64,000 nucleotides of DNA from positions 1,957,584 to 2,021,583 of the forward strand of contig NW_015170887.1 in assembly GCF_001447785.1 (NCBI RefSeq). Direction: 5' to 3'. The notes beneath the pieces were generated by a model, which was not told where the DNA came from, made no database searches, and was given only the letters and a program-made list of their open reading frames with translations. This document shows, piece by piece, positions 2,838 through 55,835 of the stretch. The first letter of the stretch is position 1. Every line of letters starts with the position of its first letter. Position numbers and translations under genes: made by a program. Source of the stretch: Gekko japonicus. Taxonomy: Eukaryota.

Positions 2838-2957
2838 GCACTATGGGAGGTAGAGTTCAGAAGGCATGATGGGAAAAAGAGTTCAGCATTTCGGAGCACG
2901 TGAACGACCAAGAGGGGGCGAATTAAGGGCTTTCATGGTATTGTGGGTAGTGTAGTT
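2838..2957 (-). promoter_or_regulatory. POMT2 promoter: three ZNF143/SBS-like motifs, an E-box and a CTCF-like motif
   Basis: Minus strand aactctacctcccatagtgc (2838-2857), ttcccatcatgcc (2863-2875), actacactacccacaatacc (2937-2956); CACGTG 2897-2902; gaccaagagggggcg 2906-2920. Confidence 0.6.
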
Positions 2958-23382: not shown

Positions 23383-23615
23383 CTAAGAGGTTCCCTTCAC
23401 CTCCCCAAGGTCCAGCTGAATTTTGCTGGTACTATTGTAGAACTTTCCAGCACGGTCAGAACCCCCGAAGACCAGTACTGTGCACAGGTTGCACTTGCCT
23501 CTGCTCTCCTTATCCATGTCTGTCAAGTGGACAGAAGTCAAGTTCAACAGCGTGTGGCCTGCCCGGGGTATCGAACAAAGATCACTGTGCACCACTGCAT
23601 TCCATGTTAACGTAT
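23383..23615 (-). CDS. Kelch gene exon 13 (stop)
   Basis: [24 protein letters not shown]...[31 protein letters not shown]. Confidence 0.9.
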
Positions 23616-26600
23616 CTGCAAAGGAAAGAGGGGACAGGGGCTGGAAAACCTGTTCTTGGCCTGAAGGAGAGTGGTGCAGTGAGAGGTGGTAACAGCTCCT
23701 CAGTTACTTACCAAGGTGGAAGGTGAATGCATCCTGAAAGGCTCCCTTGGCATTACAACCCCCACTTATCAGCACTTTCTGATCAGATACTGGCATGGCA
23801 GCATGGAAACTGAAATCAGAAGACAGTACCTTTGGTCAGCACAAAGCCTACAAGACGGCCTTCCGGCGGGGGGGGGGGGGTGGCCATGGCCAGGATTTAT
23901 GCAGAAAGCTACATGGATAACTGTAGCAAAAGGCAAAGATGCAGAGGGAGTTCTCCTGAAACTCTCTAATACATGCAAGAACAATCAGAGCAGAAGACTC
24001 CCCTCTGGATTTTCTCCAGCTCTACCCAAACTTGCATCACAGTCTTTATCACTCCCCCAGGACCTTACTCATTTATCTGTCCAGAAACCACAATACTTAA
24101 ACATCCACTGCCACCCCTTCAAAAAAAAAAAAATAGCACATCCAATTTATAACTCTTCCTCTGCTCTGGCCCAGGTGTCAGGGATGCCCACCTGATCAAC
24201 AATAGCATGCAATGACTGACGTGAACCAGGGGTGGCTTTCCCTTCTAGGCACTAGTATTGCTGCTAATCCCATAACCAGCTCTTACCTGCGAGCAGAAGG
24301 CTGACCAGAAAGAAAAGGAACTGACGTGTATTCCATGAAACCTGAGATGTCAGGAAGAATAATCAGGAGACGTTTCCAGATCAAGGATGCTGTAATAGCT
24401 GTATTGTTACAACCAAGGCCCCAAACATCATTTATTTCAGCTCAATATTACAGTGCTCCCCTTGGAGTGATAAAATTAATGGAAATTTGGAAACCATCGG
24501 GGGGTGGGGGAGCTTTTCTCTTTCTCACCCCCACCCCAGAAATGTTGAGAAAAACAGTTTTAATGCTACATTTGCTTTCTAATCAAACTTCAATCAAATA
24601 CGTTTTAATGGCATAAAAGGCATTATTTATTAGTTCAGCATATAAAAACTGTTGAGGCGAGTAGTCGTGTTGGTCTGCAGTAGAAGAGCAAGGTTCGAGT
24701 CCTGCGGCACCTTAAAGGCCAACCAGGATTCCAGGGAATAAGCTTTTGAGAGTCAAAGCGCCATTCACTAGGTACCTGATGAAGGGAACGTTGACTCTTG
24801 AAAACGTATACCCATATAAAACTGCACTCTTGGGCTTATGACATTTAAGAGCATAAATGCCTTCTGTTTCTAAAAACAAAATTGCAGATATACTCAGCTG
24901 TGAACTGCTGGCCTTATGCTACTGAAGCGCACAAAGCTTTATCTTAGAGGTCAGAGGTCCCCACTAAAGTGAACACTGCTGCCCCACTACTTAGGCAGTC
25001 ACTGCAAACCAAAGAGGCTATTGCATTCTCTATAGGTACAAGTTCTGTTGCAGGATCAGCTATCCTGCAATGGCCCACATGTGCTTTGAAACCTTCTGGA
25101 GAATCAAAGGCATTTCCCAGGTACTCCACCAAGGTAATCTCCTGTGCTCAGGCATTTCTCTTCTTCCTTTTATCCTCACCAGGCCTATCAGAAGATACTT
25201 GCCTAAAATGGACTCTGACCCAGACTCAGGCAGCTCTCAAGGAGGTAGGCCTTGTCCAGTTCTTACCTAGATCCAGGATGTGGGTATCATTCAGGTATGT
25301 AGAGTTCATCTGGCCCCCAAATATGATCAACTTGTTCCTCAGCAGGGTGCCTGAATGGCTACATAACAAAAAAGAGCACAAAGAAAGTACATGAAAGTGA
25401 ACTATCGTGCAATCTTCAAAGCCAGAGATCTTGTTCACAAATTACATTAGTTCACACCCCTCAATCTTAGTGGCAGTCAGGGGGCTCCCACAGGGGGGAG
25501 GGGTTTCAAAGAAGCCTCCAGTACAATGGGGCCACATCAAAGCTAGGAAGATCTTTGGAAGAAAAACTGCCTAGCTCCCCCGGGCCCTGTGAAAATAATG
25601 ATGACAGTATAGGAAGTTTTTAGGAAACTCCCAGGTTCCAATCACTACATCTAAGGTACACTACATCTAAGGTAGGGACATGACCTCAAAACATAGAATA
25701 TGAATCACAAACACAACAAGCAGTGCAAAAAACATACATTATTATAAGGAATACACCAAAATTTTACACACTACTGCCTGAGTAAATAAGATCTGCTAGT
25801 GCAAAAGCAGAGAACATCAAGTCCTCTAAGAGTATGTTTTCCTCTGAACATTAACAAAGCCTCTCACAAGAAATGTATTAGACAAAGCCACTGATCAAAG
25901 TGCTGGCCGACACTTAAGAGACCTGGTTCAAGTTCCCATTCTACCATACACCTCAAATCACTCCCTCACTCTAAGCTACCTCATAGGGGCTGTTGCATGG
26001 ACAAAGGAAGTGGAGAGAAGATAAGAGGCAAGGCACCACCCTNNNNNNNNNNNNNNNNNNNNNNNNNNNNNNNNNNNNNNNNNTGTTGAAAGGAGAAAAG
26101 TTTCAGCTAAGACTCAACATTAGTATGCTATGATGAGAGAGGCTCCATTACAGGGTGATAAGCAATCTACCTTTCTACTATACAGAACTGTCAGTGTAGG
26201 GTCATAGCACAGGGGGGTACATGCAGCAGGAAGAGGGGAAGAGACACTGGGAACACTCAATATATGAACAAGCTATTCCCCTCTCCCTAAAAAGAGAGGA
26301 GCTTTCTGAGCAATCTTTACACAGGCCTGTCTTCCTGGGGGTCATTTGACATAACAGTTCCACCAGATGGAGACAGAAGAGTCTCCAAAAAAAGAATCCC
26401 TTTGGGTTATTTTCAAATTGGGCAGGGGGAGAAGAGACCTAATAACACTATTTGACTTCCGAGGGATATGCGTCAAACTGCCTAAAACAAACTCAGAGCA
26501 TGATCCATTAACATCAGCACTGTCTACTGTCCTCAGTAAAGGAAGCCACAGCCCTCAGTTTGCAAGAGCTGAGCAAGGGTGTAAATGGTATGGCATTCCT

Positions 26601-29600
26601 AATAATTCCTAAGTCAGAAGCAACTTTATGACCCATAACACACACACCCTCCCATTCTGACTGGTTGCAGCTATCCAGGGTCCTAAGTAGAGGTCTTTTA
26701 CATCACCCACTACTTGATCCTTTTAAAGTGGTGGTGCTAGTGATTGAACTTAGGACCTTCTGCATGCAAGGCAAATGCTCCACCACCAAGCCACAGCCCC
26801 TCCCCCAAACCAAAAGACAGCCCCTGAACAAACAAAAAGCATCTTCCTTTTCAAATTCCTCTGAGATATGAAGCTAAAAGGTGCCTCACCCAAGCCTAGG
26901 CAGAGGCTTCTCTCCCTCCACAATGGGTTGGTACCAGATCTCATACTCGGGGTTGAAAATGAAAAGTGAATTACTGCAGGCTCCAGGCTCCAGGGCTGAG
27001 ATTTTTGGGAACGCACCTCCAAAGACAAACAGCTCCTTACGATAGATAGTAGCACTGTGATAAGCCAGTGTTGGCACCTTCCCCTTGGCCTGAGGAAGAA
27101 ATTTCCAGTCACAACAGAGTATTTGCATATTAGGGGGACCTGCACATCAAAATCTGGGGGGTGGGTTTCTAGCTACAGACATTACTGGATGACGCCTCTC
27201 AAGTTCCTGATGCACTTAGTTTTATAAAGCACCTCTCACTAATCTGTGAGCTGAATGAGGCATTAGGCCACCTCTCTATTACCTGAAGACACACTTACAA
27301 AAGGTGTTAGATGATCTGTAGAATCAGAAAGAGAGGAATGAACATACAGAGACACTTAAAGAACCTATTCTGTTGCTGACCAGTGCTTTGTTTAAAGGCC
27401 AAACTACCCTTTGCAGTTCTCTACTAGTTCTGTCTGGGTTCCCAGACCCGACTTTCAGTCATACAGCAGCTGCAAGTTCACTGCTTGTAACTCAATTCCT
27501 GAGCATGCAGGGGACCAATTCAGACTGTGGTCATCACCCAAAGAGGCCATTTTGCATCAGGAAAATTACATGAGAGGCTGAACACTGTCTCCCCATGCAC
27601 TTGGGAATTAAATTTCCAGTAGGGAACTCACAGATTATGCCAGACAGGCTGACATAAAGTCAGGTAGGGGAACCCACAGCCAGCCATAGAACCAAGTCAG
27701 CTGGGCTGGGAGACAGAACCCAGGAGAGAGCTGCTGGGAAGGTGAGTGTTTATTTGCCTTTCCTAAACTGCTATGGCCAGCATGGTTAATGAGACAAGAA
27801 AAGGAAGCTATAAAAAGTTAAGAGGCTTGTTTTCAAAACTGGAAGGTCTGCCCCAATGAATTAAACAAGAGGGACCACAGGCTCTGGCAAAAGAAATGCT
27901 AGTCAATAATTGAGAAGCGGGTTGCTAAAGCATCAAGACGAACAATAAACATTTTTTTAAATATATCTAGAGCCAGAAACCAGCCAGAGAAACAGTGGGG
28001 CCTTTGGATGACAAAGGAATAAAGGGATTGCTAAAGGAAGATGGGAAGATGACAGAAGCGCAATGACTTTTTTGCTTCTGTGTTCACTGTGGAAAGTGGG
28101 GGACTTGCTTTTGACATGATACCCCACCAAATACTCCTGAGTAAATTTAGCAATCCTGGGATAAGAAGATGGGTTCTCTTATGGATTAAAAACCAGTTAC
28201 ATGACAGGAAGCAAAGAGTAGGAATCGATGGACAGTTCTCACAATGGAGGGAAGTAAGCAGTGGGGGTCCCACAAGGATCAGTATTGGGGCCTGTACTAT
28301 TTAATTTCTTTATAAATGGATCTGGCACTAGGGCTGAGTAGTGTAGTGGCCAAATTTGCAGATGACACAAAATTATTCAGGATGGTAAAAACCAAGGCTG
28401 ACTTTGAAAAGCTCCCAGAGGAACTCCACAAAGTGGGTGAGTGGGCGACAGTAAGTGAAAAGTGATGCACACTGGGACAAAAAATCCCAGCTTCAAGTAT
28501 AAGCTAATGGGGTTTAAACTCGCTGAGATGGAGAGGGAAAAAGATCTTGGGGTCACAGGGGATAGCTCAATGAAAGTATCAACCCAGTGTGCTGCAGCAG
28601 TGAAAAAGGCAAACTCTGTTAGGGATCATTAGGAAAGGGATGAGAATAAAATGGCCAATATTGTAATGTCCCTGTATAGATCTATGGTGCAGCCTCATCT
28701 GGAATACTGTGTACAGTCCTGGTCACCATATGTCAAAAAGGACATTGGAGAGCTGGAAAAAGTACAGAGGAGGGCTAGCAAGATTATTAGGGGGTTGGAG
28801 CACCTTCCCTATGAGGAAAGGCTGAAGAATCTGGGACTTTTCCATTTAGAAAAGACACAACTGGGGGGGACAGGACATGATAGAGGTTTATAAAATTATG
28901 CGTGGAGAGAGCTGACAAAGAGAAATTTTTCTCCCTCTCCCAAAATACTAGAACTTGAGGGCATCCAATGAAACTTATGGGCAGTAGGTTCAACAGACAG
29001 AAGGAAATACTACTTTACACAGAGAGTGATTAAAATGTGGAATTTGCTGCCCCAGGATGTAGTAATAGCCACAGGAATAAACAGCCTTAAAAGGGCATTA
29101 GATAGATTCATGGAGGATAAGTCTATCAATGGGTACTAGCCATGGTGACTGATGGGAACCTCCACACACAGAGGCACTGAGCCTCCGAATCTCAGAGCTG
29201 AGAGGTAACACCAGGGAATTACTTGGCCTCTATGCCCTGTTGTTGGCCACTGTGTCAGACAAGATACTGGACTAGATGGACCATTGGTCTGATCCGGCAG
29301 GGCTCTTCTTATGTTCAGCCAGTGGAAAGTTGTAACATGCAGTCTGGCCCTCACTCACAGATATGCGAAGCCACTTCCAAGATGTCGTGTCCAGTACATG
29401 GATGCTGCTATAGCGCTTCCCTTCCCTTAGGCCGCCAAAGATGTAGATACGTTTGGTGTCTGGGTCATAGGTGGCAGTGTGACCCCGTGAACACTGTGGC
29501 ACAAAATTTTGCCCTGGGAAGTCCATGGGGAACCAGAAGTCGTCATCTGCAAAGTCAGTAGCAAAAGACAAGGAGCAAAATCAGGAAGCCCCAGTAGCCA

Positions 29601-32600
29601 TAAACATGTTAAAACCTGGAGCCAGCTTCTTGGCCCCCAGGGCTCAAATATCAAGAAATGGCAGCTTATTCTGTTTCACTATCCATCATGGCTCTTAAGG
29701 GACTCATACAGAGGGTTATCTGGAGGTCTCCCATCCAGGCACTGACCAGACTTAAACCAGTACAGCTTTAGCAAAGTTTTCTGCCTTCAACCATACCCAA
29801 GGACCTCTGAATTCTTTTCAGATTTCCTCCAAATCACTTTCAAGTCCAAAATGCCAGGTAACAGCATTGGATACTCCTTTCTCATCTGAAATACAATCAG
29901 TTCTTACCTATTCTCTCATTGTCTCCCCCACTCACTAATACAATCAGAGAAGATGCTCACCAATTTCCAGTTTCCAAAGAGCATCCTTGCAAAACTGTTG
30001 ATTGGCTCCTTCACCACCCATCAAAACAGCTGTTTCAGGGTCACTGAGGCACATGGCATGACACCATCGAGGGCTTGGACATGCTGCAGAGCAGAAATTC
30101 ATACAGTCAACAGAACTGCATTATAGACCCCACCCTACTTTGAGATGGTAGGTCAGGAGACCCCTCCCCTCAAAACTATGATGTATAATTAATAGAGAGT
30201 TCAAGATAGTTCACAACTATAAATACAAGGGGGTAAAAAAGAAAAGGCAGTTCAGCTCCTCCCCACACACAAAATCAGAACAAAATAATTTTCCTCAAGG
30301 TAATAACTGGTTAGTTTACTCTTCAGCAGGGGTCATTTCGTAGAAAAAGAGCTGCAGGAGCTCATTAGCATAACTTATTCGCATATGCCACACCCCCTGA
30401 CATCACCGGAAGTGTGCACCAGCCCCTCTGACAGGCAGAGGGAGAGGCTCCAAAATCGCAGGGTAGCTGCTGGAGCCTCTCCCCAAGATACCCTCCATGT
30501 TTCAGGAACATTGAACCAGGGGGTCCAATTCTACGGCCCCCCAAACAGGTTGCCCCCATCCCCTCCATTGTTCTCTATGGTGGGGGGAAAAGTTACTTTT
30601 TTCCCGCCATAGAGAACAATGGAGAGAATAGGGGCAACCTGTTTGGGGGCCCGTAGAATTGGACTCCCTGGTCCAATGTTCTTCAAACTTGGTTGGTATC
30701 TAGGCCCGGCGTTCTAGCGGGGAGCCTGAAAAGGGGGGGCAGCTGTGCAGGCCATTTTTCAGGCCCGGTGCTCCGGCGCGGAGCCTGAAAAAGGCGGCCA
30801 TAACTTTTTTAAGAGCCCCTCCCGAGAGCTGGGGGTGCCAGAATGACCTCTCGCGTGTGATGTCCGAGAGGTAGCGAGAGGTGGAATTTGTCCCTACGAG
30901 TCCAAGGCCACCATCCCGGGGCTCAGGGAGGCAAGGGAACGTTTCGCCCCACCCCTCCCCCCGCGGGCGGGCATTGCAGCTGCTGCTGAGAACAGCGAGA
31001 GCGGCCATAACTTTTTAAAGAGCCCCTCCCGAGAGCTGGGGGAGCCAGAATGACCTCTCGCATGTGATATCTGAGCGGCAGCGCCACAGGCATCACACAC
31101 GAGAGGTGGAATTTGCCCCTATGAGTCTAAGGCCACCACCCCGGGGCTCAGGGAGGCAAGGGAACGTTTCGCCTTGCCCCTCCCCCCCGCGCGGGCATCG
31201 CAGCTGCTGGCGAGAACAGCGACAGCGGCCATAACTTTTTCAAGAGCCCCTCCCGAGAGCTGGGGGAGCCTGAATGACCTCTCACATGTGATGTTCGAGT
31301 GGCAACGCCGCTCGGACATCACACGCGAGAGGTGGAATTTGCCTCTACGAGTCCAAGGCCACCACCCCAGGGCTCAGGGAGGCAAGGGAACGTTTCGCCT
31401 CACCCTTCCCCCCGTGCACGGGGGTCGCAGCTGCCGCCATAACTTTTTAAGGAGCCGGGAAGGAGAGCTGGGGGAGCCAAAATGACCTCTCGTGCGAGGG
31501 GTGGAATTTGCCCCTACGAGTCCAAGGCCACCACCCCGGGGCTCAGGGAGGTGGGGGAACGTTTCGCCCCCCACACACTGTGTCCCACCTGATGGCTGGT
31601 GGGAGCAGGGGGCGGGGCTTATGTGCCCGCTCCCTGGGCCCCTGACTGGCAGAGCGGTGCTCCGGTGTGCTCCGGCAGGAACCAAGGCCTGCTCTTCAGG
31701 AATTAGTGGCATGGGTAAAATGTCTATTGGACCAGCTGTATTTTAAAACTAGCTTTTAAACAAAAACAGATGCGGAGATCAAAGAGAAGAACTATATAAT
31801 GAAATAAGATGTTATTTCCCAGAGTATGTATGGTTCTTATCTGACATTTCATCACTCAGTTTTTTAGTATATCCTGCATTTCTTCCATCACAGAGTTCAG
31901 GGTGATGAACACTGAGTTCAAAGGCAGTCTCCCATCCATTAACTGACCAGATCCAGACTTGCTGAGCTTCAGTAAGGTTGCTCTATCTAGTGCCAGTACC
32001 CTGACACTTTGAGGGTCAACATATGAACAGCCTCTATTGAGACAGATTGCATTTAAGTTGATGGGCAGCAATTTCTCAAAGCTCACTTTGAGGCTTTTGA
32101 TCTGCCAAAGCTATTTTATACTCATCACCACTTCCTGTTATGGCTTTTGAACAACCCACCATGATTGTATCTATGTCCACATGTTAGCTGTTAGTATTTA
32201 AGGTTCAATTAGAAATGGAAAAGGTATTTTCTGCCTGAACCAGTGATGTAGGTTTTCTGAGGAAAACTGAACCTGAAAATTTGCCAATTCAAATTTAAAT
32301 AAATGATTTAAATTATGTTAGCAAAAGAAGGCAAATACACCATGTACAAGTACTGGGGTATGTCCATGCTTCATATTGCATTTAGCTCATTTTAACATGA
32401 CTGATATGTAGCACAACAGCCCTGATAACTAGTTCATATTTACATATGCAGGGCAGAAAATTTTCCATGGAAAAACATAGCATCAGAAAACGTTCTTCCC
32501 CACATCACTGGTCTGAATTTGAAAGAAATGTGTATTTTTGGTCTGCATAACTGTACCCAAGAGAACTACCTTCAGCCAGGAACCCTGCAACTCTTTGAAA

Positions 32601-35600
32601 CAATTACGAGCATGATCAAAGACATGGGAACGAATTCTCTTTTGCTACTTATAAAGAAGATACAGATGCATGCCAATTTTTACTTCTTTTTTATAAGGAA
32701 TTTCTGGACCTATTTGAGAACAAGATTAAGAATAGAATACTTGCTCTCAAGCTGCCCCAGAGATTCATTATAAAAAAGGCGGCAGCAAGACAACTGGTAT
32801 CCACAGATTTCTCATGACAACTCTCCTCAAACTGCCCCAGGGATTCATTATAAAAAAGGATGTGACATGACAACTGGTACCCACAGATTTCTCTTTACAA
32901 TACTCCCACAAGTCTTTCTGCAGTGGTGTCTCAGCCTCACATTACTGGAAGATAAGCGGCAATAGATATACTACTAAGGCTGAGTGTGGGGAAAATGCAG
33001 TGTTCTGGGAACAGAAGCATTTCCTTGAGAAAATATTTTATTCCTAGGGAACAGATAAATTCACTCTCACATTTCCAACAAGTAACCAAGTATCCAGATG
33101 AGGTATCTAATCAACTCAATAATGGAGTGACTCAGCCACAGCTGCACATTATTGTAATTACCCATATCTATCACCTGTAGAGTGGGAGCAGGAATACAAT
33201 TTAAAGTGCCAAAAGGAGTACACAGGAAACTATCAGATCCTATTTTTAACCACAGCTCTTGGCCTTGTACTCCACACACATCCCCCACTTTTTCCCAGAC
33301 AGATGTGGACACAAGTAGTAAGCATGGGAGAAATGCTTTGAAAGATGCTTGGGAGGGGGGACAGTACCCACCACATCCACATGACACTTGGGCACATTAA
33401 ATGTACCCCCCCCCATCCCCAGCATTATGCACAACCAGAACATATCTGGCTTTGAAAATACGGTTCTGCCAATCATATGTACAGCTTGAGCTTCAAAGGA
33501 AGCACTTGTTTGGCGTATTGTTCATTCTGGGGTTCATTTCTGTTCCTCACATTGGAGAACACTGAAGAAAACCAAACAAAACTTACAAGAATCTTTGCCC
33601 ACAGAAGAAGAAACTCAAGAAAAGTCTAAAGGATAGAGGTGCTCACCTTGCAACTCTTTCATTTCTAAATCTGCGGAGAGAACAGACATAAATTATCTTG
33701 GTGTGCAATGGTGTTTTCATGCTTCTTTTAAAAAGTTCTGGGCTACCCACCACTACCCAAAAGGAGAGTGATCAGCTTATGGGTTGACTGATCTTTCACC
33801 TACTTCCTCTCCAATTTTTTCGTACAGCTATGTCCACTCATAGCTATTAATGTATGTGCAACTGAAGTAAACAATTCAGAAACCAGAGAAAAGGATCTAA
33901 GCCCACAAGTGTTGACTTTATCAAAGGAAATCATACACACTCCCTAGTTCATGCAACTAATGACCAACCATATGAATAATAGTTTTCATGCTTCATTCAC
34001 CCTTCCTAAACTCCTACTTCTTGGCTGTTTGTTGCAACAAGTGCTTCTCCTTATCACAAAAGAATCTGCAACCTTGGAGCAAAGCAGCTGGACATATAGA
34101 TGTCTGAACTTTTAAGCTAAAACAGGAAGCACTGTATGTCTTGCACTACTTAGATTCAAGTTTCTACAGAGAATAATATTTTATGACTGGTTAAAAATGC
34201 AAGTAACACAGGGGAATTAGTTTAAATGATCTCATTTTGCTTGACTAAGGTAATATTTGGTGTCTTAATGCCATAAACTCTACCCTTCAAAGCAGCCATT
34301 TTCTCCAAGGGAACTGATTACTGTCATCTGGAAAGCAGTTGTAATTCTAGGTAATCTCCAGCTCCCACCTGGAGGATGGCAACCCTAGTTCCCCTGGAGG
34401 CATGATATCGCTCTGAAGTCCCACCTGTGCTCAAACCCCACCCTCCATCCCCAAATCTTTAGGAATTTCCTAACCTGGAGTTGGCAACCCTATCTCTTTC
34501 CTACCCAACACTCAACCTACCTTTATCTGCCCCCCCCATCTTAAGCTTCCCGCCCCCAGCAGCCTCTTCCTAGGAAAACTGTGGCCCAGTTGTGTGGTGC
34601 AAGCCACTGGGTCAAGCCCACTAGCATGGAATTGTGGGGAAGCACTTCACTTTCCCCTCTATCTCCCTCCCCACATTATTTCCTGTTTTCCTTCCCCTGG
34701 CAACCCCCATATTCTCCCCCCTTTCCCTGCCTCATTCTATCCTACTCAGCCATTCACCAACCTACCTTTTATCTGCCTCCCGTCTTCAGCTATATGTATT
34801 CTTTATTATTTAATTCATTCATACCCCACCTTTCTCCACAGTTGGGGACCAAAGCAGCAGAGGGCCCTTTTCAGGTTTGCAGAAAGATCTGACCTGCCTA
34901 TTCACAGCTCCAGTCACCGGATTTTACGTATCCTCAGATCTGGCTAACTTTGCTACCAACTTTGCTACTGGTATATAGAGGATGATATCATGAAATAAAC
35001 AAACAAACCAGAAGCCTTTTTTCTATGTCCAGAAATTGAATTATTTTTGCTGGGCCAAGGAAGTACCCTTTATATAGACACACTATGAGCCCAAAAGTGG
35101 ACAGTGGACAGGTGCGTAAAGATCAATGCCTCAGTCTTTGGAACTTTGTTAACCAGCTGGTGGTAAAGTTCAGAAATAAAATGTGTGCCTAGTCACCGGA
35201 TAACCTTAAATTTTAGAAGTCTAAAGAAGCTCAATTTAACTCAAGTTAAATTTGTGGGTTGATTTGCATGTTTAGTTCCAGGCACTGAAAGCACCTGATT
35301 TGGGTAACAAATTTTGAGATTCTATGCCCATAAAAAGCAGCATGTTTTTTGTTATGGTACCCAGGGCCAAGCACTTTTAATCCATTCAGATATGCATCTG
35401 AATGATGGTGCGCAGCATGCAGACGATAGACCAAAACTGCATGTGGACCCCCCTTCCCATTACTGGTTTATGCACATTCACTATTCTTTTGCCGGAAGCG
35501 TGCAAACAGAACAAATCCCTGCGTACTTTTGTACATCCACTACCTACAGCTATTGTTCACACTTGCTCAAACTCCAGTCATCTTTGAACACGCTTCATTT

Positions 35601-38600
35601 GCTCACTGATTTTTGATTGCAGGAAAGGTAAGCCAAGGAGTGAAAGACACAGGGGAGATGGTTCTGAGACACAGACATTGGAGAAAGAACTGCCAAACGG
35701 TTATGTTAATAGCACTCAGGTTTGGGCACATGGCTGATAGAGAGCTATTCACAGAGCGGAGTGCTCTGAATGCAGGCTGAATTGTACATGCAGAATGACA
35801 GGTATGTCTGTACATGTGTTTTCTCTCTTGTGGTGGCTCCCTCCTGATGGAACAGCCTGCCTGAGAAGGTCAGGAAGGCCCCCATTACTTCTACCACTTC
35901 ACAGAATGTGCAAAACAGAAATGTTCAGCAGGGCATTTTTATAAAGGAAATTGAGTTATGGTATAATGGAATGGTTCAAAAAGTGCTTTTCTAAAGGGAA
36001 GAGGTCTTGGTGGTGGTGGTGGAAAGTGCCATAAAGTCACAGCTGACTCATGGCAACCCTGTAGAGTTTTTGAGGCAAAGAGATGCTGAGAGGTGGTTTG
36101 CCATTGCCTGCCTCCGTGTCACGACCCTGGTATTCCCTGGAGATCTCACATCCAAACACTAGCCAGGACCGACCCTGCTTAGCTTCCAAGATCTGATGAG
36201 ATCCAGCTAGCCTGGTCTATCCAGGTCAGGGCAGTCTATGCTCTTACTACATTGTTTTCTACTTGTACAATACCATGTACTGCATTGCTTGACATACCTC
36301 ATCTGATCATTTTTGCACTGCTATGAATTCATAATCCTAGTGTCACTGCATTGCTTATTAGATATCCCACGCTATTGGATACATTTTTTAACATTGTGAA
36401 AGCCACCTTAAGTTTACTGAAGGGACGATCACTATCCCGAGCACTTCAAAGTATGAACTGTTTATCGTTTGGTTGTTTTAACTTGTTTTTAAGTGTTTTA
36501 TTGTAATCTGGCACATGGTGCCAATAAATGTAAGCCGCCCTGAGCCTGTCCGCGGGGAGGGTGGGATATAAATATAATAATAAATAAATTAATTAAGTCA
36601 ATAATAAAGGTTGGGCTATAAACAGAATCAATATAAACAACAAAAGGTTTTATACCCCACCCTTCACTACCCAAAGGAGTCTCAGAGCAGCTTACGATCG
36701 CCTTCCCTTCCTCTCCCCACAACAGACACCCTGCGAGGTAGGGGGGCTGAGTGAGAGAGCTGTGACTGACCCAAGGTCACCCAGCTGGCTTCATGTGGAA
36801 GAGTGGGGAATCAAACCCGTTTCTCCAGATTAGAGTCCTGCCTCTCTTAACCACTACACCAAACTGGCTCTCACTCCTTTATTATTTTACCTTCCATTTT
36901 GTCCTCTCCTTTGGCTGCTGAAGGCTCAAAGAGAACCCTTCTGGTCTTCCGTAGAGGAACTGGGCTAGGCTGGCAAGTTTTCTGTTTGGCCTCCTCACAT
37001 TCTTGCTGTATAGAAGTTGTTTCTAGAGCTGGAAGCATCAACAGTGTCTCCAATGATGGAGAAAATTCCTTCTTCTCAGGCACAATTTCTTTAACAGGTA
37101 CTGCTGATCTCTGGCCTTCAGCCTGTCTGACACAGTAGAATTAGATCAAAAGCAGGAAATTAGTTGTGAAGAATGCAGGGGTGGTCCTGAAAGGAGTGTT
37201 GTGCAGGGCACAGCTCTTGGCTACAAGGAATCCTGCAACTTTCAATGAGAACTGCAACAACTGGGCAACTGCTCTGCAACTGGCACACAGTGTCTGAGCT
37301 GGAGCCATCCAACACAGTATGAAGGAAGAGATCTGGATTGTACTCATTTCTTGTGGAGAATCGGAGAATCCAAGGGACATTGCTGTCAACCTGTTTGTTC
37401 AAAGAAATCACAAACAAGCCTCCCTCCCTCTACTAGTAACCCGTTTGTTCAGACAGCCAATGTGAAGTTATACTTCTGAACATTCTTCTGTGCAAAAAAC
37501 CCAAGTATCTTTGAATGCAGAAAATAAGCCTGTCAAGGAGACAGGCTTAGTGTAGCACATATTATGTGCATGAACTTTTAACCTGAAGGGAGCAAAACCA
37601 GTACCGCCCCCCTCAACACACACAGTCTAAAGAAGCTCAATTCAGGCTTCTGCCATTTCAGTATGCTTTGAATCATTGCTGATCTGGCCGCGTTCTTTAG
37701 GTTCACAATTATTCATGCAGATGATACCAAAAAATGACAGAGATGAACGAACAAGGCTAACAGGAGAGAGCTCAACAGCTAAACATACCTCAAGAGCCTC
37801 ATCTGGTCCCTTGACGTCAGAAACAATCTCTTCAGGAAGAACAGGTGACTGACCCAGTTCTGGGGCCTGAAATGGGCGAGTGGGGGTGCTGTTGAGCAGC
37901 TAAGAAGGAGATGCAGATATGAGGACAGCTGAATCTACTTGACCCAAGTTTAATACAGAAATGGTCAGCAGCTGCCTTTGGCTCTTTCAGACAGACAGTC
38001 AAAGCCCACAGTATGGTTGCTTACACACTAGGTGCTTAGTCTGAAGTAGGCATCTTTCTTTCACTCACTATTTATGGAGAATCCAAGCTATGCTGTCATG
38101 GGCTTTTTGCATTTCAATGTTATCTGTGCTGTTTCCTTTTTTAGAGGTCTGATTTGTGGAGATTTTTCCTCACATAAAATGCAACTGCACCACTGGCCAC
38201 CTATGTACACATCAATAAAGCACCACTGAGGCTTTCCAGGGCTACCTTTTTAAATACCTCCTTTCTTCTTCTCAGCTTATTTAATTACATCCTGTTCACT
38301 CCTGCAGCATTCCTGAATGGGTCCATGATCAGTTCCTAGTCCAGGCCGGGGGGGAGGGGCGGGAAGTTTCAGTTGCTGCCGCTCTTGTCTTTGCAGCAAA
38401 ATAATTTTGTTCACTAGCTTTATTTCTTCAATCATGCCTTTATGAAATTATGCCCAAGAAAAATAAAAATATCTCAGTTGCAAAGGGGAAAAAACAATTA
38501 AAGCCACCTGTTTTGTGGGGGACTCTTTAGAGATCTGTTCAGGAATGCTACAGCCATTTTGAGTTAACAGGCATTAATTAATCAAGGAGAAGCAGAAGCA

Positions 38601-41600
38601 CTCTCAGCCATGTTGTGAAACAAGAAGGAAATAACAGTATTTTAAAGGACTTCTCCTGAATGGGACTGACTTGCTTTCTTCCCAAGTAAACGTAATGTCT
38701 TGCGCATAGGGATACACACTGCTGGATTTTTATGTAAGTGCTGTTTGGAATCAGAGTTTCAGATCCACACTAAGCCAGTTGTGGAAAAGGAACTCTTCAT
38801 CCATGAAAAAGGGGTCATAGTGTGGAAGCAACTAGTGGAGTTGTTCTACCTCAATCCTACTTTGCATTACAGAAAGATGGCCAAATCAAGACTCAAGCCA
38901 TGAGAATGGTCTGTATAGTTTATAGACTACAACTGATAGTATCATTGATGGGAATTAAGGGAATCCCATTAACCTAGTAATTAGTAAAACCCATCTGAAC
39001 TCAAGACAAGAACCATCGAACAAGACAGTCTAGAAAACATGCAGACAAGCACTTTTCAAATATATCAGATAACACTCAATAGCAAAACGTTACCATCCCC
39101 AGTCAAAGCAATATTACAGGGATGGATACTGTTTTCAGAACATCTACTTTGTGGCTTGGGTCTAAGTTAAAAGAATCCAAATGGCCCAAGTTCAGGGCTC
39201 AGAAATGAGATATCAGTTCTCTTACCTTTTCCTTGACAGTCAAGAGCAGCTTAATAGGGTTACCACTCTCTGCTTGCTTCAACGAAGCCATCAGAACATC
39301 CACCCTCCATTCACCTTCCCACACCAAACACCTGCCCAGGCAAAAACACAGGTCACTGTTGACATTGCTCTGGGATAATTTCATTTTTACTTTGATAGCT
39401 GTTGATATAATAACAGAGATTTTATGGAGCATCTCAAAGAATACCCCAAAGGATCTCGATGGTAACAAGAGCAGAACATCCCGGGTGGGCCTCATAATAG
39501 ACAGTGCATAGTAAGTTACATAAGAACATAAGAGAAACCAATGTTGGATCAGGCCAATGGCCCATCCAGTCCAACACTCTGTCACACAGTGGGCAAAAAT
39601 ACCAGGTGCCATCAGGAGGTCCGACAGTGGAGCCAGGACACTAGAAGCCCTCCCACTGTTGCCGCCCTCCACCCAAGCACCCAAGAATACAGTGCATCAC
39701 TGCCCCAGACTGAGAGTTCCTATCTATACCTTGTGGCTAATAGCCACTGATGGACCTCTGCTCCATATATTTATCCAATTCCCTCTTGAAGCTGTCCATG
39801 CTTGTAGCTGCCACACCTCCTGTGGCAGTGAATTCCATGTTTTAATCACTCTTTGGATGAAGAAGTGCTTCCTTTTATCTGTTCTAACCCAACTGCTCAG
39901 CAATTTCATTGAGTGCCCACGAGTTCTTGTATTGTGAGAAAGGGAGAAAAGTACTTTTTTCTCTACCTGCTCTATCCTATGCATTATCCTGTAAACCTCA
40001 ATCATGTCAACCCTCAGTCCTCATTTCTCTAAGCTAAAGAGCCCCAAGCGCTTTAACTTTTCTTCATAGGGAAAGTGTTCCAACCCTTTTATCATTCAAG
40101 TTGCCCTCTCCTGCACTTTTTCCAGTGCTATAATATCCTTTTTGAGGTGTGGTGACCAGAACTGTACACAGTATTCCAAATGAGGTCGCGCCATCGATTT
40201 ATACAAGGGTATTATGACACTGGCTGATTTGTTTTCAATTCCCTTCCTAATAATCCCCAGCATAGCGTTGGCCTTTTTTATTGCAGTTGCACACTGTCTC
40301 AACATTTTCAGTGACTTATCTACTATGACTCTAAGATCTCTCTCTTGGTCAGTCTCCGCCAGTTCAGACCCCATCAACATGTATTTATAGTTAGGATTTT
40401 TGGCCCCAATGTGCATCACTTCATCACATCAGTTCATCCTTCAAGCCTGAATTCTACGGCAGACTGGGATGGTATCCATATGGAAGTAGGCTTGTGTGGT
40501 TTCCCCACTGTTGGTGTGGTGGCCAATACAGAGCAGCAACAAGACTTTAACATGGTAGGTTTTTCTGCAGTTAACCTGTCCCAGTCTCCCAACAGTAGCC
40601 ACCCCTCTCCCCAGGGCCACTGTAGTTGTTTTTTATTTTTAAAATGGTAATTAAATTACAGTTATAGCACTATAGCACATATCAATATGTGTAACAAGTT
40701 CTCTGAATTGTCAAGCTTTCTTTCTTTCTTTTTAACGGAAGTCTCTAGTGTCTTGCATTGTGGAGATATGCCTTTCCCCTTATATGCAATAGAAAAGGCT
40801 AGAGACTTACTTACAAAAAGAAAGCTGGGAATTCAGAGAGCCTGTTATACATATGTTATTATATAGATATAATGATGTTTAATTGGCAATTTTTTAAAAA
40901 ATGAAAACCTGGTGGGTGGAAGAAGAAGCTGCTACAAGGACAATGCCAGGGAAAATGGCTGCCAAATGAGTGGGAAAATCCAAACTTTCACACCCACATA
41001 GCAGCAATTCAAGCTTTACTGTGCTCTTTCCCAAAACTTCATAGCAAAGCAGGTTTAAGTAATATTGGGAAAAGGCTGAGGACACCCTAGAATGTGTGCA
41101 GATGCACCACAATGCTGTGGGGAAGCAGAGAAAAAACCCACTTTCCAGCAGTACTGACTGTGGGGCAGGTAACCCGTGTGGAAATGGCCGGGGTTAACAT
41201 ACTGGAAGGTCTTCGTTTAATTCCCTGCTGTCTTTATAATGTCAGTTTCTTAAAACTATCCTGTCACCGTAAATTTGGAAAGGATTTTACATGTTAAGAC
41301 AACCGTGACAGGCAGCATATTCCACTTGGCATCTAGAATCTACCTGGTTTCAGGCCCCAGTTTTCCAATCCTTTGTGGCTTAAGGTCCGGATTCACTAGT
41401 ATTTCCACAGTGATGCTCATCTTCTGAGAACAGCAGCTCCAGTCACCCAAACCAAAAATCACTAGCTGTTTCGGCAGCGGAAGTGGCAAGAGAATCTGGT
41501 AACATTTCTGACCGCATTTGCTTGGGCAAAAAAAGGGAAAGAAAACAGGGTCACCATATATCAAAAAGGATGGGGGCAGGGCAGAATTCCAGTTTTTTTT

Positions 41601-42210
41601 TCTTATCTTTAAGGCTTCTTTTGCTTGTAATCATGGTGTGCACCCACAGGAGAAAGTAGACGAAAATGTACAGGAAATTAGGAATCAGACTGAATCTCCT
41701 TGCCCTGCTACTTTCTGTTCACACTGAGGATTTTTTTGATGTAAACATTCAAAGGTAGAACCCACCACGTGCCATCTGAAGTGGCACAAGCCAGGCTTGC
41801 TTACCCAAAAGCTTCTTTTTAGTCACATTCGACAAGCCAAGATAGAGGGGGGAAAGCAACTACAAAGCGAAGACCAAACAGGCGACGCCTTATGATAGGA
41901 CTTACAATAAGGTTTCGCCGTTTAGTTACAACTTCTGCCGGCTTTCTTGCTCATTAAGGCCACAGAAATGGATCTGGCTACGTGAAGCCAACACTCGGAG
42001 GTCTCACCTGCTGAGCTGACGGGGCGGCTCCTGCAGAGACCAAAGAACGTAGAACTCGAGCTGAGCTCCCCCCTGGGCAAAGGCAACCCCTCGGGGCTTC
42101 TGGGTGGCTGCTGCAGCACCCTCCCGCCGCCAGAGGCCTCCGGGCGTCCAGCTCCATCGACGGTGCAGAGGCTGCGGGCCGTCTATAGTTAGGACGCTTG
42201 AAGAGAGCAT
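23383..42210 (-). CDS. Uncharacterised Kelch-repeat protein (~613 aa), 13 exons: 42210-42008, 41520-41344, 39331-39226, 37899-37789, 37122-36891, 33670-33647, 30083-29961, 29546-29359, 27089-26890, 25358-25267, 24341-24287, 23809-23712, 23615-23383
   Basis: All junctions GT-AG and phase-consistent, 1842 nt open; six R-x-x-H/GG blades (PRWCH..MGG, RGHTA..FGG, AYHSA..FGG, RLGHS..FGG, RSFHA..SGG, RAGHT..FGG); CpG island at exon 1; start codon less certain. Confidence 0.88.
23712..23809 (-). CDS. Kelch gene exon 12
   Basis: [32 protein letters not shown]. Confidence 0.9.
24287..24341 (-). CDS. Kelch gene exon 11
   Basis: [19 protein letters not shown]. Confidence 0.88.
24660..24815. mobile_element. 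Penelope-like inverted terminus with degenerate hammerhead cores
   Basis: CTGATGA...GAAA on + at 24776-24803; decayed mirror copy on - at 24737-24772. Confidence 0.6.
25267..25358 (-). CDS. Kelch gene exon 10
   Basis: [30 protein letters not shown]. Confidence 0.9.
26043..26083. other. Assembly gap (others at 43040-43143 and 62051-62121)
   Basis: Run of N. Confidence 0.99.
26890..27089 (-). CDS. Kelch gene exon 9
   Basis: [25 protein letters not shown]...[23 protein letters not shown]. Confidence 0.92.
27880..29316 (+). mobile_element. CR1 LINE, internally deleted ORF2 through the 3' tail
   Basis: [39 protein letters not shown] motifs; ttcttatgttc tail. Confidence 0.9.
29359..29546 (-). 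CDS. Kelch gene exon 8
   Basis: [63 protein letters not shown]. Confidence 0.92.
29961..30083 (-). CDS. Kelch gene exon 7
   Basis: [40 protein letters not shown]. Confidence 0.9.
30327..31691. mobile_element. Non-autonomous hAT element with an internal palindrome and a GC-rich ~225-bp tandem array
   Basis: Perfect 8-bp TSD CTCTTCAG; cagg...cctg ends; inverted arms ~30505-30580 / 30608-30690; about 3.5 tandem units in 30790-31570. Confidence 0.88.
32743..32894. repeat. Local tandem duplication, 2 copies of ~75-80 bp
   Basis: ctgccccag.gattcattataaaaaagg...gacaactggta.ccacagatttctc occurs twice. Confidence 0.85.
33647..33670 (-). CDS. Kelch gene exon 6 (24-nt microexon)
   Basis: gttctctccgcag|AT TTA GAA ATG AAA GAG TTG CAA G|gtgagc; symmetric phase 1. 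Confidence 0.65.
36891..37122 (-). CDS. Kelch gene exon 5 (linker)
   Basis: [20 protein letters not shown]...[20 protein letters not shown]; phase 0 to 1. Confidence 0.75.
37789..37899 (-). CDS. Kelch gene exon 4 (linker)
   Basis: [37 protein letters not shown]; ttag|...|gtatgt. Confidence 0.75.
39226..39331 (-). CDS. Kelch gene exon 3
   Basis: [36 protein letters not shown]. Confidence 0.85.
39518..40422 (-). mobile_element. CR1 LINE 3' portion
   Basis: ORFs 40096..40419 ([20 protein letters not shown]) and 39724..40005 (TRGHSMKL...WNSLP); tail ttatgttcttatgt. Confidence 0.92.
41344..41520 (-). CDS. Kelch gene exon 2
   Basis: [58 protein letters not shown]. Confidence 0.85.
42008..42210 (-). 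CDS. Kelch gene exon 1 (start uncertain)
   Basis: gccATG at 42210 in frame to ...[19 protein letters not shown]|GTGAGA; CpG island ~41870-42700. Confidence 0.75.
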
Positions 42211-43395
42211 GGCTGGCAAAAGAGACCTAATGGGACACTGGATTTTAACTGACGGAGGCCCCGGGAATTGGGGATGCGCCTGCCAATTAACTCGGGGCAA
42301 CCCGAACGCGGAAACCTCTTTGGCTGGAGAAAGGAGGCCTCCTTGACCGGCTAGCTTTGCTGTTTAATCTCAGATGAGTGCTAAGGGGGGAAGGCAGACA
42401 TTTTGTGCGTGCTCTGAGGTATTTGTTACCTCACATGGTTGGGCGCATTTACTTTTCGTGCTAATAAAATAGGCTTCTAACGCTTGCGTGCGAGAACCGG
42501 TGCACACTGAATCATTTTTTAAAGCGCCGGGTGTGATCCGTATCTGGAGAGGATAGTTTTACAGGAAGCGGAGAGAGAGAAGAAAGCGTACATCTCCTTA
42601 CTTGAGTTTCTGCGACAACTCCGGCGTAGATGCGTTGCATCCTCTAGGTCTGATACTCCACTAATTACCTAGAAACCTCTGAGTCGCACAGCGCTCAAAA
42701 GACAGGTTGTAACATACTTCTTGATGGACTGTCAATGCTAGCCTGTACATTTTTATTCAGAAGCTTGTTTGTTTTATAATTCTCACTTTGTTCAGTATGG
42801 TTTTCAGATAAGGGTGCCTAAGATGCTGCATTGGTATTTTCCGCTGCTTCCGCGACACTCTCCCTCTCTCCTAAAACGATGTCCACATCTCTTTAGATTT
42901 CACTCTCCTACTGCACTGTTAGAATTTCTGCTGTCTGCACTATTTTATTGCCCAATGGTTTCGGCTCCGTTGTAATTGTGGCTTCTCCCTGAGGCAACCT
43001 GATATGGTTAAAAGCCCTCTAAGCCCCCCCCCCCCCTAANNNNNNNNNNNNNNNNNNNNNNNNNNNNNNNNNNNNNNNNNNNNNNNNNNNNNNNNNNNNN
43101 NNNNNNNNNNNNNNNNNNNNNNNNNNNNNNNNNNNNNNNNNNNCTTCTGCAAAGTAAACACCCAGTCTTTACCGGTTTTTGGCTATTTTTGCTTTTTTGT
43201 TTGAATCAAAAGCTGGGCAAAACTGAAAGCTGAGAAAATCCTTCTCTTTGAATGTAAAGAGAAGTTTATGGCTTGTTGGCTTGTTGCCTTAAGTAATTTA
43301 TTGCCTTGTGTAAAGCTAATGGGTGCCTGCAAACACTAGAGAAGAGGGAGAACAAAAACATTCCCAGCCAGCAAGCAGAAATAAATAGCAGATTT

Positions 43396-52844: not shown

Positions 52845-53062
52845 TTAACTGGTATAATAAACGTGGAAAAAGAGAATCTTGTTTCGCAGAAGGGAGTAAG
52901 AATTGTCAAATTTGAGCAAGTAAATGCCTTCCCCAGGATAATCATGGCTGCCTACTTGTACTTCCCGATGACTATCTCGACGGTAGACAGGCATGATCTC
53001 CCCATAGCGATTTCGCAAATAGCTTTTGGAGCCCCTTTCCACATCACCAACAGGAATAGGCC
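52845..53062 (-). CDS. TMED8: TMED8 last coding exon (GOLD domain C-terminus)
   Basis: GDVERGSKSYLRNRYGEIMPVYRRDSHREVQVGSHDYPGEGIYLLKFDNSYSLLRNKILFFHVYYTS*. Confidence 0.95.
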
Positions 53063-53519
53063 CTGAGAAGGGAAAAAAAACATACTATGTATCCACCTGT
53101 CAAGAAATGGTGCACTGATAACTTGGGGTCACGAGTCTAAAGGTGGCTGCATGAAAATCACATTATGCTACATACTGGACTGTGATCTTCAAATAATCTG
53201 CTGCCAATGATAGATTTGAGGTCTAACACCCCAGTCTTTCATACATTACATAAAAAACTCCTGCTCAAATTGTATAGTCTATTTTTACCAAACACGTTTA
53301 GAATTAGAACATTTGAATTACAGAGTAAATATATAAGCAACATTTCATTGTTTAATGTTTTTAAATTTGCTATTATTGTTAGCTAGAAAAATGGTAGTTT
53401 CAAGGCTACAGAATTCACTCGTTTTTCAAGATGATGCACAAGGACCATTTGTTCCAGCAGGCCAGTCAAGGGTTTTAATAATGCTGTTGAAGTTGTAGTG
53501 GTTTGTTTATAAATATATA

Positions 53520-55030
53520 TATGTTTTTATTAAAGGTAAAAAGGTTTAACAAACATAGTAATACAACAAACTAATTTTTCTTTTGTTTTTTGTACAATGA
53601 AACATACCATTTACAAGGCATGACTCATAAAAATATAGAGTTTACATAACATAGCGAAGTGTAGAAAGCCTAACAAAGTTATCAAGGGAAACTTTATACT
53701 CTAAGATCAAAATGTATGCATTTTGGGTGAATCAAAAATTCAGTTACCAAGATGAAGAAAAGACATTATTAATATGTTGATTGACCCAACTATTTAGAAA
53801 CTCACTGGGCTTCTTAGCCAGTATACATGTTGAGGCTAGAATATTCTTTTTGTTTCCACCAGGTTACACATAATTTGATCTTCAGATCCATGTCAGGAAA
53901 CCCGACCAGGATGAAGGTATGTATTCTTCTTCTGATAGAAGGGTTAAGATTGGGAATCACTTTGCATTGAACTCTGTATTAGATTGGTTTTCAGGGGCAT
54001 TCTTACATTTATCTGTTATACTCTCCATTACATATTGATCCCATAGTTTTCTGTACCAAATCTGGATACTCGGAGGGTCCATGTCTTTCCAAGTTGAGGC
54101 AATAGAGACCCTAGCTGCATACAGCATTGTTTCTAGCGTGCTCCTGTGGTGGTGTTGTTTAATAGGTTTGGGTCATAGTTCTAGTAATAGGCTTTCAGGA
54201 TTTAGCGGTAAATCTATATCTAAGATCAGTTTTATGTGTTTTAACACTTCTAACCAGAATAGTTTAATTTTAGTACACTCCCACCAGCAATGTGCAAAAG
54301 AGCCGAGAGATCCTTTCCATCATAGAGGGGAATAGGAGGGAATAGGAATAGGAGGGAGACATATGTGATAAGGCTTGGGGAGAGAGATATCATCTCGTGA
54401 TGATTTTGAGCTTTTGGACTTCCACTGGGTAAGAGCGGGGGGGAGATTTGTTCGACCTCCAAATTTCAGACCACAGCGTTTCATCTAAGTGCATTGTGCA
54501 GTCCTTCTGCCAAGATTTTTGATATGATAATGATTTTAAGTCAGTTTCTTTCAGTAGCAATTTATAAATAGCTGAAATCATGCCTTTGTTCTGTGAGTTA
54601 TAGCATTTGAGGATGAGTTCAAATTCTGTGGGTGGCTTCAGCGTGACTTATCTTATTTTATATTGTTTGACTGCGTATTGAATTTGTAAATACAAGTACC
54701 ATGGAATCTTGTATTTCAACACCTTTTCTAAGTCTAGTTTGGGACGGAGACCCTCCTTCTGGACTATATCACAGTAACGGAACAAGTGAACTTCTCTCCA
54801 TCATTTACCTAAATCACAGTGTACAGTTTCTAAGAACCAGGGTTGAGAGGTGAAGGTGGAATATCGAGAAATCTGTGGGAGGAGTTTACATTTCATTTTT
54901 GCCCAGTATTGTAGAGAAGGGTACATGAGGTTGTTTTGTGTTATTTCAGTAGTTTTGTTAGGGAGATTGCCCCATATTAGGCTGTCTATGTTATGTGTGT
55001 TAGAGTGGTCAGCTACTAATTAGACCCATG
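53520..55030 (-). mobile_element. L1/Tx1-like LINE 3' fragment
   Basis: Decayed ORF2 C-terminus (MISAIYKLLL...SWQKD...WSEIW; HWWEC zinc-knuckle remnant) with an AATAAA/A-rich tail near 53525. Confidence 0.7.
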
Positions 55031-55538
55031 GAGGGTTGTAGTGTTTTTTAATGTTTCTATCAATGCCCCTGAGTATGGTCCAAAGAAGTATGATGCAATT
55101 CTACTGCTGAAACTACAGCAGTGACAAATGAGTGGCTGACCAGGAACTGCACATAATCCACTCTGCATTCACAAGGAACACGCACAGCAGATGTGTGTCT
55201 AGAAAGCTGTCAGGTGTTCAGCTTCAAGAACACCAAAATTGACCTACCTGGTTCTGTTTTATTAATGTTGTTGGCTTTAGAAATTATTGACATTATGCTT
55301 TCACTTTGTAAAACTCCTCAAACATATGGGGGGAGGAATCTGAATAAACAAAAAGTGATGAAGCATTCATGGTACAAGTGAAAGATAAAAATGAAAGATC
55401 TTGAAGGGCATTCTTCATCTGGTGTCTAAAAATGTTGAAACTCATTGAGAAGTGTATGAACAAATGTGAATTACACTGAGGTTCATAGGTTCTGATACCA
55501 ATCCCATTGCTTTGCCCCTTAGACAGTTGTGCACTGAC

Positions 55539-55835
55539 CTTCAAACTCTTCTTCATCATCTTCATCTTCATCACTTGATTCACTGACTTGTACAGTAATG
55601 GCAGTACTTGTAACAGGAGTCCAATCAAAATAGACTCCAAAGCCAATATCATAATCTTCTGTGGCAAACTCCCAGCATACTCGCTTCCCATCAGGATGGG
55701 TTGGTACCCGGACAGTCACTACTTCACCCCGTTTCACTACCATGCGGGCATTCTTCTCCTTTGCCATCTTTGTTTTGAAGTCCCTTATCTTGGCACTTGT
55801 CCATGTAGTTGGTGGAATTAGAGGAGGTGGCTGAG
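55539..55835 (-). CDS. TMED8: TMED8 penultimate coding exon (upstream exons not found in the window)
   Basis: VVKRGEVVTVRVPTHPDGKRVCWEFATEDYDIGFGVYFDW plus acidic loop; tag|...|gtcagt. Confidence 0.95.

Follow-up and report, generated by a model that had tools for sequence, protein, structure and literature searches.

Among proteins of known structure, those with the propellers closest to the one described here are KLHDC2, KLHDC3 and KLHDC10, which share a KLHDC2-like six-bladed Kelch propeller and serve the cullin 2–RING ligase (CRL2) as receptors for C-terminal degrons; in KLHDC2 the carboxylate pocket is, we take it, made by Arg236, Arg241 and Ser269. Other Kelch proteins, such as LZTR1 and FBXO42, carry cullin-linking BTB-BACK or F-box modules. 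A mammalian protein of yet another sort, KLHDC9 or KARCA1, has 349 amino acids (aa), is testis-enriched and nuclear, and binds cyclin A1–CDK2 (PMC12035522; PMC3534086); it has been located in the nucleoplasm, in nucleoli and on mitotic chromosomes (PMC12035522). Here we are concerned with a single Kelch gene at positions 23383-42210 of a 64,000-nucleotide (nt) stretch of the genome of the gecko Gekko japonicus (assembly GCF_001447785.1, contig NW_015170887.1, positions 1,957,584 to 2,021,583 of the forward strand), which in its whole length we call the window. An earlier note, made from the letters of the DNA, had pointed to this gene as intact and uncharacterised.

We have very little doubt that this is a real, intact and transcribed gene, that it belongs to a family whose zebrafish member is called zgc:163014, and that its product has three parts: an N-terminal domain (N-domain), a long linker and a Kelch propeller. 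This identity, taken together with a proposed adaptor role, is the best explanation we can offer for the locus as a whole, and a likely one. The adaptor role by itself is a much more tentative matter.

A transcribed gene of the zgc:163014 family

The gene runs on the minus strand in 13 exons, whose 12 introns are all GT-AG and whose phases agree throughout, and it reads out as 1842 nt, that is, 613 aa and a stop codon. It opens with the first in-frame ATG, at 42210, and closes with its sole in-frame stop, at 23383-23385; the 400 nt around the ATG are GC-rich, with a CpG observed/expected ratio of 0.55-0.63 (at 42000-42199 the GC content is 0.67 and the ratio 0.63). To place the exons, protein P0165 of Heteronotia binoei, the nearest orthologue of full length, was aligned to the window by tblastn and the splice sites were read, with exon 6 supplied by RNA; on the window, P0165 gave 11 high-scoring segment pairs of about 80% identity that span its residues 1-600. 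Single-exon Pfam scans found Kelch repeats in six open reading frame (ORF) pieces at 23383-30102 and no match in the pieces upstream of them. The by-eye reading of 13 phase-consistent exons and some 613 aa has thus been borne out, with canonical splice sites and one terminal stop, and its end points proved exact (42210 is the A of the ATG and 23383 the last base of the stop codon).

One assembly gap falls inside the gene, in intron 9. No coding base of the model is an N, the Kelch motif PLPRL-G-HSGTLL is completed where exon 9 meets exon 10 in phase 2, and the orthologue's residues 445 and 446 are contiguous across that junction (tblastn, P0165); the gap hides no exon. Two further gaps in the window lie at 43040-43143, about 830 nt upstream of the ATG and toward TMED8, and at 62051-62121.

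Is the gene transcribed, and as one piece? Three RNA-seq runs of the same species (X10, X11 and X12) and one contig set (X1) were mapped on 36800-42300. In run X11, exons 1-5 are covered to a depth of 1-20 while the introns stay near zero except at one repeat, and the junction of exons 4 and 5 is crossed by 8 reads from 7 starts. Beyond the exon 5 donor (36891), 29 reads continue into a 24-nt microexon and then into the first 6 nt of exon 7; the microexon sequence matches the window exactly at one place only, 33647-33670, where it is flanked by AG and GT. In these reads the splicing of the linker exons to the Kelch part is seen directly. A spliced X1 contig of 561 nt spans the exon 4/5 junction and runs 7 nt past exon 5; to judge from bin depths, its first 211 nt would cover exon 3 together with the final 106 nt of exon 2. 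The earlier note had reckoned with the chance that exons 1-5 might not be spliced to exons 7-13; the species' own RNA, from exon 5 to exon 7, and the annotated orthologues speak for their union. Run X11 also carries two variants, probably polymorphisms: 41494 A>G, which replaces Ile77 by the Thr that the Heteronotia orthologue has there, and 36949 C>T, which is synonymous (Arg257).

The microexon is shared with other members of the family. Its homologous peptide, DLEVKELQ, is found in Zootoca, snake, turtle, Gekko kuhli and chicken, and the Sphaerodactylus protein has the microexon too. It is included in the RNA of the species studied here but missing from the annotated proteins of Heteronotia (P0165) and Paroedura (P0173), where it is either alternatively spliced or was overlooked by annotation.

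The search for relatives started from one Kelch exon, run against a library of 1.84 billion proteins; the result was flooded by multi-repeat proteins, and orthologues were picked out as those with few matching stretches and high identity. What emerged was a handful of proteins, some 580-590 aa long, which match in only two stretches, at 44-50% identity, and whose N-terminus is that of exons 1-3. A word search with one family member, axolotl protein P0047 (search 1), returned at least 120 full-length relatives, and among the matches listed were proteins from teleosts, gar, sturgeon, bichir, coelacanth, amphibians, turtles, squamates and birds. A second search (search 2), with a 301-aa fish fragment and limited to proteins of 166-527 aa at E 1e-5, gave 134 matches, of which the 120 listed add members from shark, skate and ray, together with ‘Zgc:163014’ records from lamprey and hagfish.

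By identity the gecko gene stands nearest to Heteronotia binoei P0165 (about 80%) and Paroedura picta P0173 (about 76%), with 45-57% to the fish and amphibian members. It has the architecture, the N-domain motifs, the microexon and the Kelch blades of zebrafish zgc:163014 and of its counterparts in Anolis, Zootoca, Gallus (LOC772017), Xenopus (LOC108698685) and Chrysemys, and on this likeness it is an orthologue within the zgc:163014 family; the earlier note's tentative choice of that zebrafish name was correct, as the family searches confirm. The databases are less agreed, and file members of the family under zgc:163014, ‘uncharacterized protein LOC...’, ACBD4/5, TEA1, ‘RING finger protein B’, KLHDC1/2-like and MEGF8. 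For one salmon record, a ‘Rab9 effector ... -like’ protein, a link to the family could not be confirmed.

There is also a second, more distant branch. Paralogue B (P0373, P0375-P0378 and P0382) is called ‘kelch repeat-containing protein’ in gar, sturgeon, Scleropages and Melanotaenia and ‘KLHDC1-like’ in the frog Mixophyes; at an identity of about 35%, it has the same order of N-domain (hidden Markov model (HMM) E 3.6e-16 to 8e-5), linker and six-blade propeller. In a maximum-likelihood tree with 25 rows and a midpoint root, clade A stands apart from paralogue B plus the cyclostomes with support of 100/100. Clade A reaches from sharks to birds and includes Heteronotia P0165, through which (being 80% identical) the gecko gene is placed, its own protein standing outside the tree; lamprey and hagfish group with paralogue B, under the midpoint root only. 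Because the cyclostomes and both clades share the layout, the combination of N-domain and propeller must be as old as the vertebrates, and the guess that this was an old vertebrate gene has held up, with members from sharks to birds and relatives in lamprey and hagfish.

Three parts of one protein

The N-domain, about 110 aa from exons 1-3, follows a low-complexity extension in exon 1 that is specific to sauropsids. AlphaFold2, run on P0165 with an alignment of 63 orthologues, models residues 41-155 at a predicted local distance difference test (pLDDT) score of 83-92, with strands at 44-49, 60-62, 67-72, 80-86, 96-102, 110-115 and 121-124, a helix at 130-142 and a last strand at 146-153. Among those 63 species, which range from fish to birds, the N-domain has a mean pairwise identity of 0.55 and is as well conserved as the propeller with its 0.64; the linker has 0.28. 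Ten N-domain columns of the alignment are invariant, and the family's motifs FYVLW..PR, QxIGxL, LVWEGDW and KLxLTV, whose columns are invariant or nearly so, are all present in exons 1-3.

To what does this domain belong? Pfam gave it no family, whether asked with the window's exons, with five orthologues or with all 63 members of the alignment at E up to 10. Exons 2 and 3 had no PDB sequence match at E up to 10, and the PDB matches of the full orthologue all begin past residue 250, with none in the N-domain. Look-ups in the ESM Atlas with the N-domain gave no usable match, and no natural short protein consisting of an N-domain fragment was found with a 161-aa ORF containing exon 3 as query (region 119-161). 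The idea that the domain is a pair of degenerate Kelch blades was tried and rejected (hhalign probability 3.7%). An HMM of the N-domain, set before the 401 proteins collected, picks only members of the family, those of sharks, lamprey, hagfish and the second paralogue included.

After the N-domain comes a linker of about 120 aa, rich in Pro, Glu and Ser and encoded by exons 4-6, which in P0165 (residues 156-273) is modelled with pLDDT below 50 and is disordered. Two features of it are conserved in the alignment, and the rest varies freely. The first is a TPx(R/K) site directly after the N-domain; the second is a basic patch just before the microexon, RKTRR in the gecko, of the form K/R-K-x-R-K/R-(V/L)-L-F in tetrapods and PKK(R/K)(K/R)L in teleosts.

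Exons 7-13 supply six Kelch blades, recognised by Pfam exon by exon and modelled as a propeller at pLDDT of about 90 or more. When the 63 orthologues were scanned with Pfam at E up to 10, only Kelch families appeared, from about residue 260 on, among them the family named after KLHDC2 at 2.8e-77. Fold searches with the whole P0165 model likewise gave propellers only (the 50 rows listed by VIA-align 2 fall in residues 265-600, and Foldseek was alike), and Foldseek ranked KLHDC2 first, at E 4e-23. The propeller is thus of the KLHDC2/KLHDC3/LZTR1 type, with KLHDC2 and KLHDC3 closest, at a sequence identity to KLHDC2, KLHDC3 and KLHDC10 of only 18-26%. The last strand of the propeller ends at residue 595 of 600 in P0165, and in the window 9 residues separate the conserved end from the stop; since the chain stops some 5-9 residues after the propeller, the C-terminal helical BC/Cul2 box is absent. 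No BTB/BACK, F-box or acyl-CoA-binding domain was found by Pfam at E up to 10 in the 63 orthologues or in exons 1-5 of the window.

All of this agrees closely with what had been claimed for the protein on first reading: a domain in exons 1-3 that could not be assigned (no Pfam family in exons or orthologues, no PDB sequence match), a Pro/Glu-rich linker with an RKTRR patch in exons 4-6 (seen in the exon readings, and disordered in the model of P0165), six blades of RABEPK/KLHDC type (by Pfam on the exons and by the AlphaFold2 propeller) and no BTB, F-box or acyl-CoA-binding domain (by the 63-orthologue scan).

What the protein may do, and the question of mammals

What, then, might such a protein be for? 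We imagine an adaptor with two ends. The propeller would use its top face to hold a short peptide belonging to a partner, as its structural relatives do; the N-domain would make a second contact, one peculiar to the family; and the basic patch would act as a nuclear signal, possibly under the control of a cyclin-dependent kinase (CDK). A role as substrate adaptor is suggested by analogy only, and the nuclear adaptor mechanism, drawn from the anatomy of the protein and from its relatives, is a possibility that we rate as clearly less than even.

Several things weigh against our account, and they should be set down together. RNA reaches exons 1-7 only, and for the junctions from exon 7 to exon 13 the model relies on homology and splice signals. 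Exon coverage is absent from runs X10 and X12 over the mapped region, and expression is for that reason probably tissue-specific. The seven strands and the helix of the N-domain also fit a PH-like (pleckstrin homology-like) barrel, so that a known fold is possible; because the domain by itself was compared by sequence only and that barrel has the same pattern of strands and helix, we claim no new fold. Nuclear targeting and CDK control are read from short motifs only. Finally, we found no paper that names zgc:163014 or members of the family under six LOC numbers.

Mammals deserve a question to themselves. In the window the Kelch gene lies between GSTZ1 and TMED8, where the earlier note had put it (Pfam GOLD_2 on one side, PDB matches to GST zeta on the other), and in human we take GSTZ1 to adjoin TMED8 directly. 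Neither family search lists a mammalian protein among its 120 matches (240 rows in all), and in search 2 at most 14 matches lie beyond those listed. For the axolotl query the scores of turtles, lizards and birds are 48-56%, and the matches listed go down as far as teleosts at 44-47%, in a comparison for which all amniotes are expected to be about equidistant; both searches depend on shared five-residue words. That no mammal is among the matches listed argues against a normally conserved mammalian orthologue, and against the family being RABEPK or KLHDC1/2/3. With a loss of clade A in mammals the protein comparisons are consistent, and only that.

Perhaps the mammalian gene is there, in disguise. 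KLHDC9 could be a fast-evolving, relocated and N-terminally shortened orthologue of clade A in mammals, or else the orthologue of paralogue B, and of the alternatives to our account this one, though rather unlikely, fares best. A family member from the turtle Gopherus agassizii (P0334, a record derived from UniProt/Ensembl) is named ‘Kelch domain containing 9’, and its sequence is plainly of the zgc:163014 family. To our knowledge KLHDC9 is annotated mainly in mammals and the zgc:163014 family only outside them, which makes the two ranges complementary. There is also a likeness in kind, KLHDC9 being a Kelch-only nuclear protein with a link to the cell cycle; its nuclear and mitotic location and its binding of cyclin A1–CDK2 (PMC12035522) fit the conserved basic patch and TPx(R/K) site.

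Against the idea stands the size of KLHDC9, which with its 349 aa is too short to hold the N-domain as well. KLHDC9 is absent from the family-search matches listed and from the PDB matches of the full orthologue, and since search 2, at E 1e-5 and over 166-527 aa, has no mammal among the 120 of 134 matches listed, the many mammalian KLHDC9 clusters are by that search not detectably similar to the family. At NCBI no listed family member bears the KLHDC9 name: the Gopherus evgoodei protein in the same 90% cluster as P0334 is called ‘uncharacterized LOC115649906’. Human KLHDC9, moreover, is at a different locus, presumably 1q23.3 and not beside GSTZ1.

Would the protein instead be a cullin–RING substrate receptor that recognises C-terminal degrons, as KLHDC2, KLHDC3 and KLHDC10 are? 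These are its closest solved propellers, and the strength of the KLHDC2-named Pfam family speaks for them; yet the gecko protein lacks the C-terminal box that ties such receptors to Elongin B/C and Cul2, has an extra N-domain and a long disordered linker that they do not, and shares with them only the low identity given above. Nor does the N-domain, rich in strands, look like the BTB, F-box and SOCS modules (none found by Pfam), and of the cullin-linking modules of LZTR1 and FBXO42 Pfam found neither. We think this reading improbable.

That the gene is the orthologue of RABEPK (p40), as some automatic names suggest, is very improbable. Those names are inconsistent with one another, as the medley listed above makes plain; the gecko protein of 613 aa has a conserved N-domain and a linker beyond the Kelch-only RABEPK of about 370 aa; the gecko gene lies in the GSTZ1-TMED8 block, and human RABEPK, we believe, at 9q33; and mammalian RABEPK clusters are absent among the 120 of 134 matches listed in search 2. 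Least of all can we believe that the model is an artefact, whether a pseudogene or two genes wrongly joined with the N-terminal exons outside the Kelch transcript, for, despite the risk that goes with any by-eye reading of exons and despite the two runs that lack exon coverage, the frame is intact, the splice sites are all canonical, RNA reads connect exon 5, the microexon and exon 7, and full-length orthologues of more than 100 species show the same architecture with a strongly conserved N-domain.

We return to our own reading, the zgc:163014-family adaptor, with a bolder form of it that we would call doubtful. In this form the N-domain is a new module, the family is confined to vertebrates and consists of two ancient paralogues that are nuclear, cell-cycle-linked Kelch adaptors, and clade A has been lost in mammals or has become unrecognisable there.

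The surrounding DNA and the place of the family

The exons of the gene and the other features of the window are collected in the table. A record from the plover Pluvialis apricaria (P0331) is a member of the family labelled ‘protein TMED8 isoform 3’, which suggests a read-through or a model merged with TMED8, and hence the same gene order in that bird.

Table. Exons of the Kelch gene, its intron 9 gap and neighbouring genes, in positions of the window
Feature	Position	Strand	Remarks
Exon 1, coding part	42008-42210	-	203 nt; N-extension, then start of N-domain; donor CAG/GTGAGA; RNA depth about 1-3 in X11
Exon 2	41344-41520	-	177 nt; N-domain core with invariant motif and QRIGKL; RNA depth 3-6 in X11
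Exon 3	39226-39331	-	106 nt; end of N-domain (LVWEGEW, helix, KLLLTV); RNA depth in X11 and X1
Exon 4	37789-37899	-	111 nt; start of disordered linker (NSTPTRP, TPxR site); 34/34 aa match to P0165
Exon 5	36891-37122	-	232 nt; acidic/Pro-rich linker and basic patch; RNA depth 6-20 in X11
Exon 6 (microexon)	33647-33670	-	24 nt; DLEMKELQ with split codons; flanks CGCAG/ and /GTGAGC
Exon 7	29961-30083	-	123 nt; Kelch blade 1; Pfam Kelch_4; 98% identity to P0165
Exon 8	29359-29546	-	188 nt; Kelch blade 2; Pfam Kelch_KLHDC2_KLHL20_DRC7 2.4e-11, Kelch_3, Kelch_4
Exon 9	26890-27089	-	200 nt; Kelch blade 3 with long family-specific loop
Exon 10	25267-25358	-	92 nt; Kelch blade 4
Exon 11	24287-24341	-	55 nt; tblastn with P0165 and splice sites
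Exon 12	23712-23809	-	98 nt; Kelch blade 5
Exon 13, coding part	23383-23615	-	233 nt including stop; Kelch blade 6 with HLTDMDKE insertion
Assembly gap (N)	26043-26083	.	inside intron 9; distance to exon 9 about 800 nt, to exon 10 about 680 nt
TMED8	52848-55875	-	two GOLD_2 exons, 55522-55875 and 52848-53042; Pfam 2.9e-31 and 5.6e-32; upstream of Kelch gene
GSTZ1 exon	9693-9878	+	GST zeta / maleylacetoacetate isomerase; PDB 1fw1 3e-05, 2cz2 3.8e-05; convergent with Kelch gene
POMT2-like first exon	near 2584-2841	-	by eye only

There are also repeats in the region. The one at 39376-40479, in intron 2, draws hundreds of reads from all RNA runs, mostly 95-99% alike and with many back-jumping joints. 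ORFs within it and within 28080-28893 resemble the reverse-transcriptase tails of CR1-type long interspersed elements (LINEs), and these are transposon copies that form no part of the Kelch gene. In intron 6, at 30875-31438, there is a GC-rich tandem repeat with a unit of 224 bp, 2.5 copies and 88% matches, and it is because of this repeat that similar ORFs run through 30700-31700.

What does one more Kelch gene add? RefSeq and Ensembl have already predicted it in well over a hundred species, under automatic names that mislead, and it is a well-defined member of an unstudied family, not a new kind of thing. What we have added is a definition of that family: a conserved N-domain without a match among Pfam families or PDB sequences, a linker in which a basic patch and a TPx(R/K) site are kept, a propeller like that of KLHDC2 but lacking the cullin box, two ancient paralogues, cyclostomes included, and no clear mammalian counterpart among the matches listed. 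If clade A has indeed been lost or become unrecognisable in mammals, the neglect of a gene that has been conserved over some 450 million years would be accounted for; a conserved vertebrate gene missing from mammals would lie beyond the reach of work on mouse and human, and zebrafish, Xenopus and chicken would be the systems in which to study it. And if the family should turn out to be a lost relative of KLHDC9, it would give a poorly understood partner of cyclin A1 both an evolutionary context and a missing domain.

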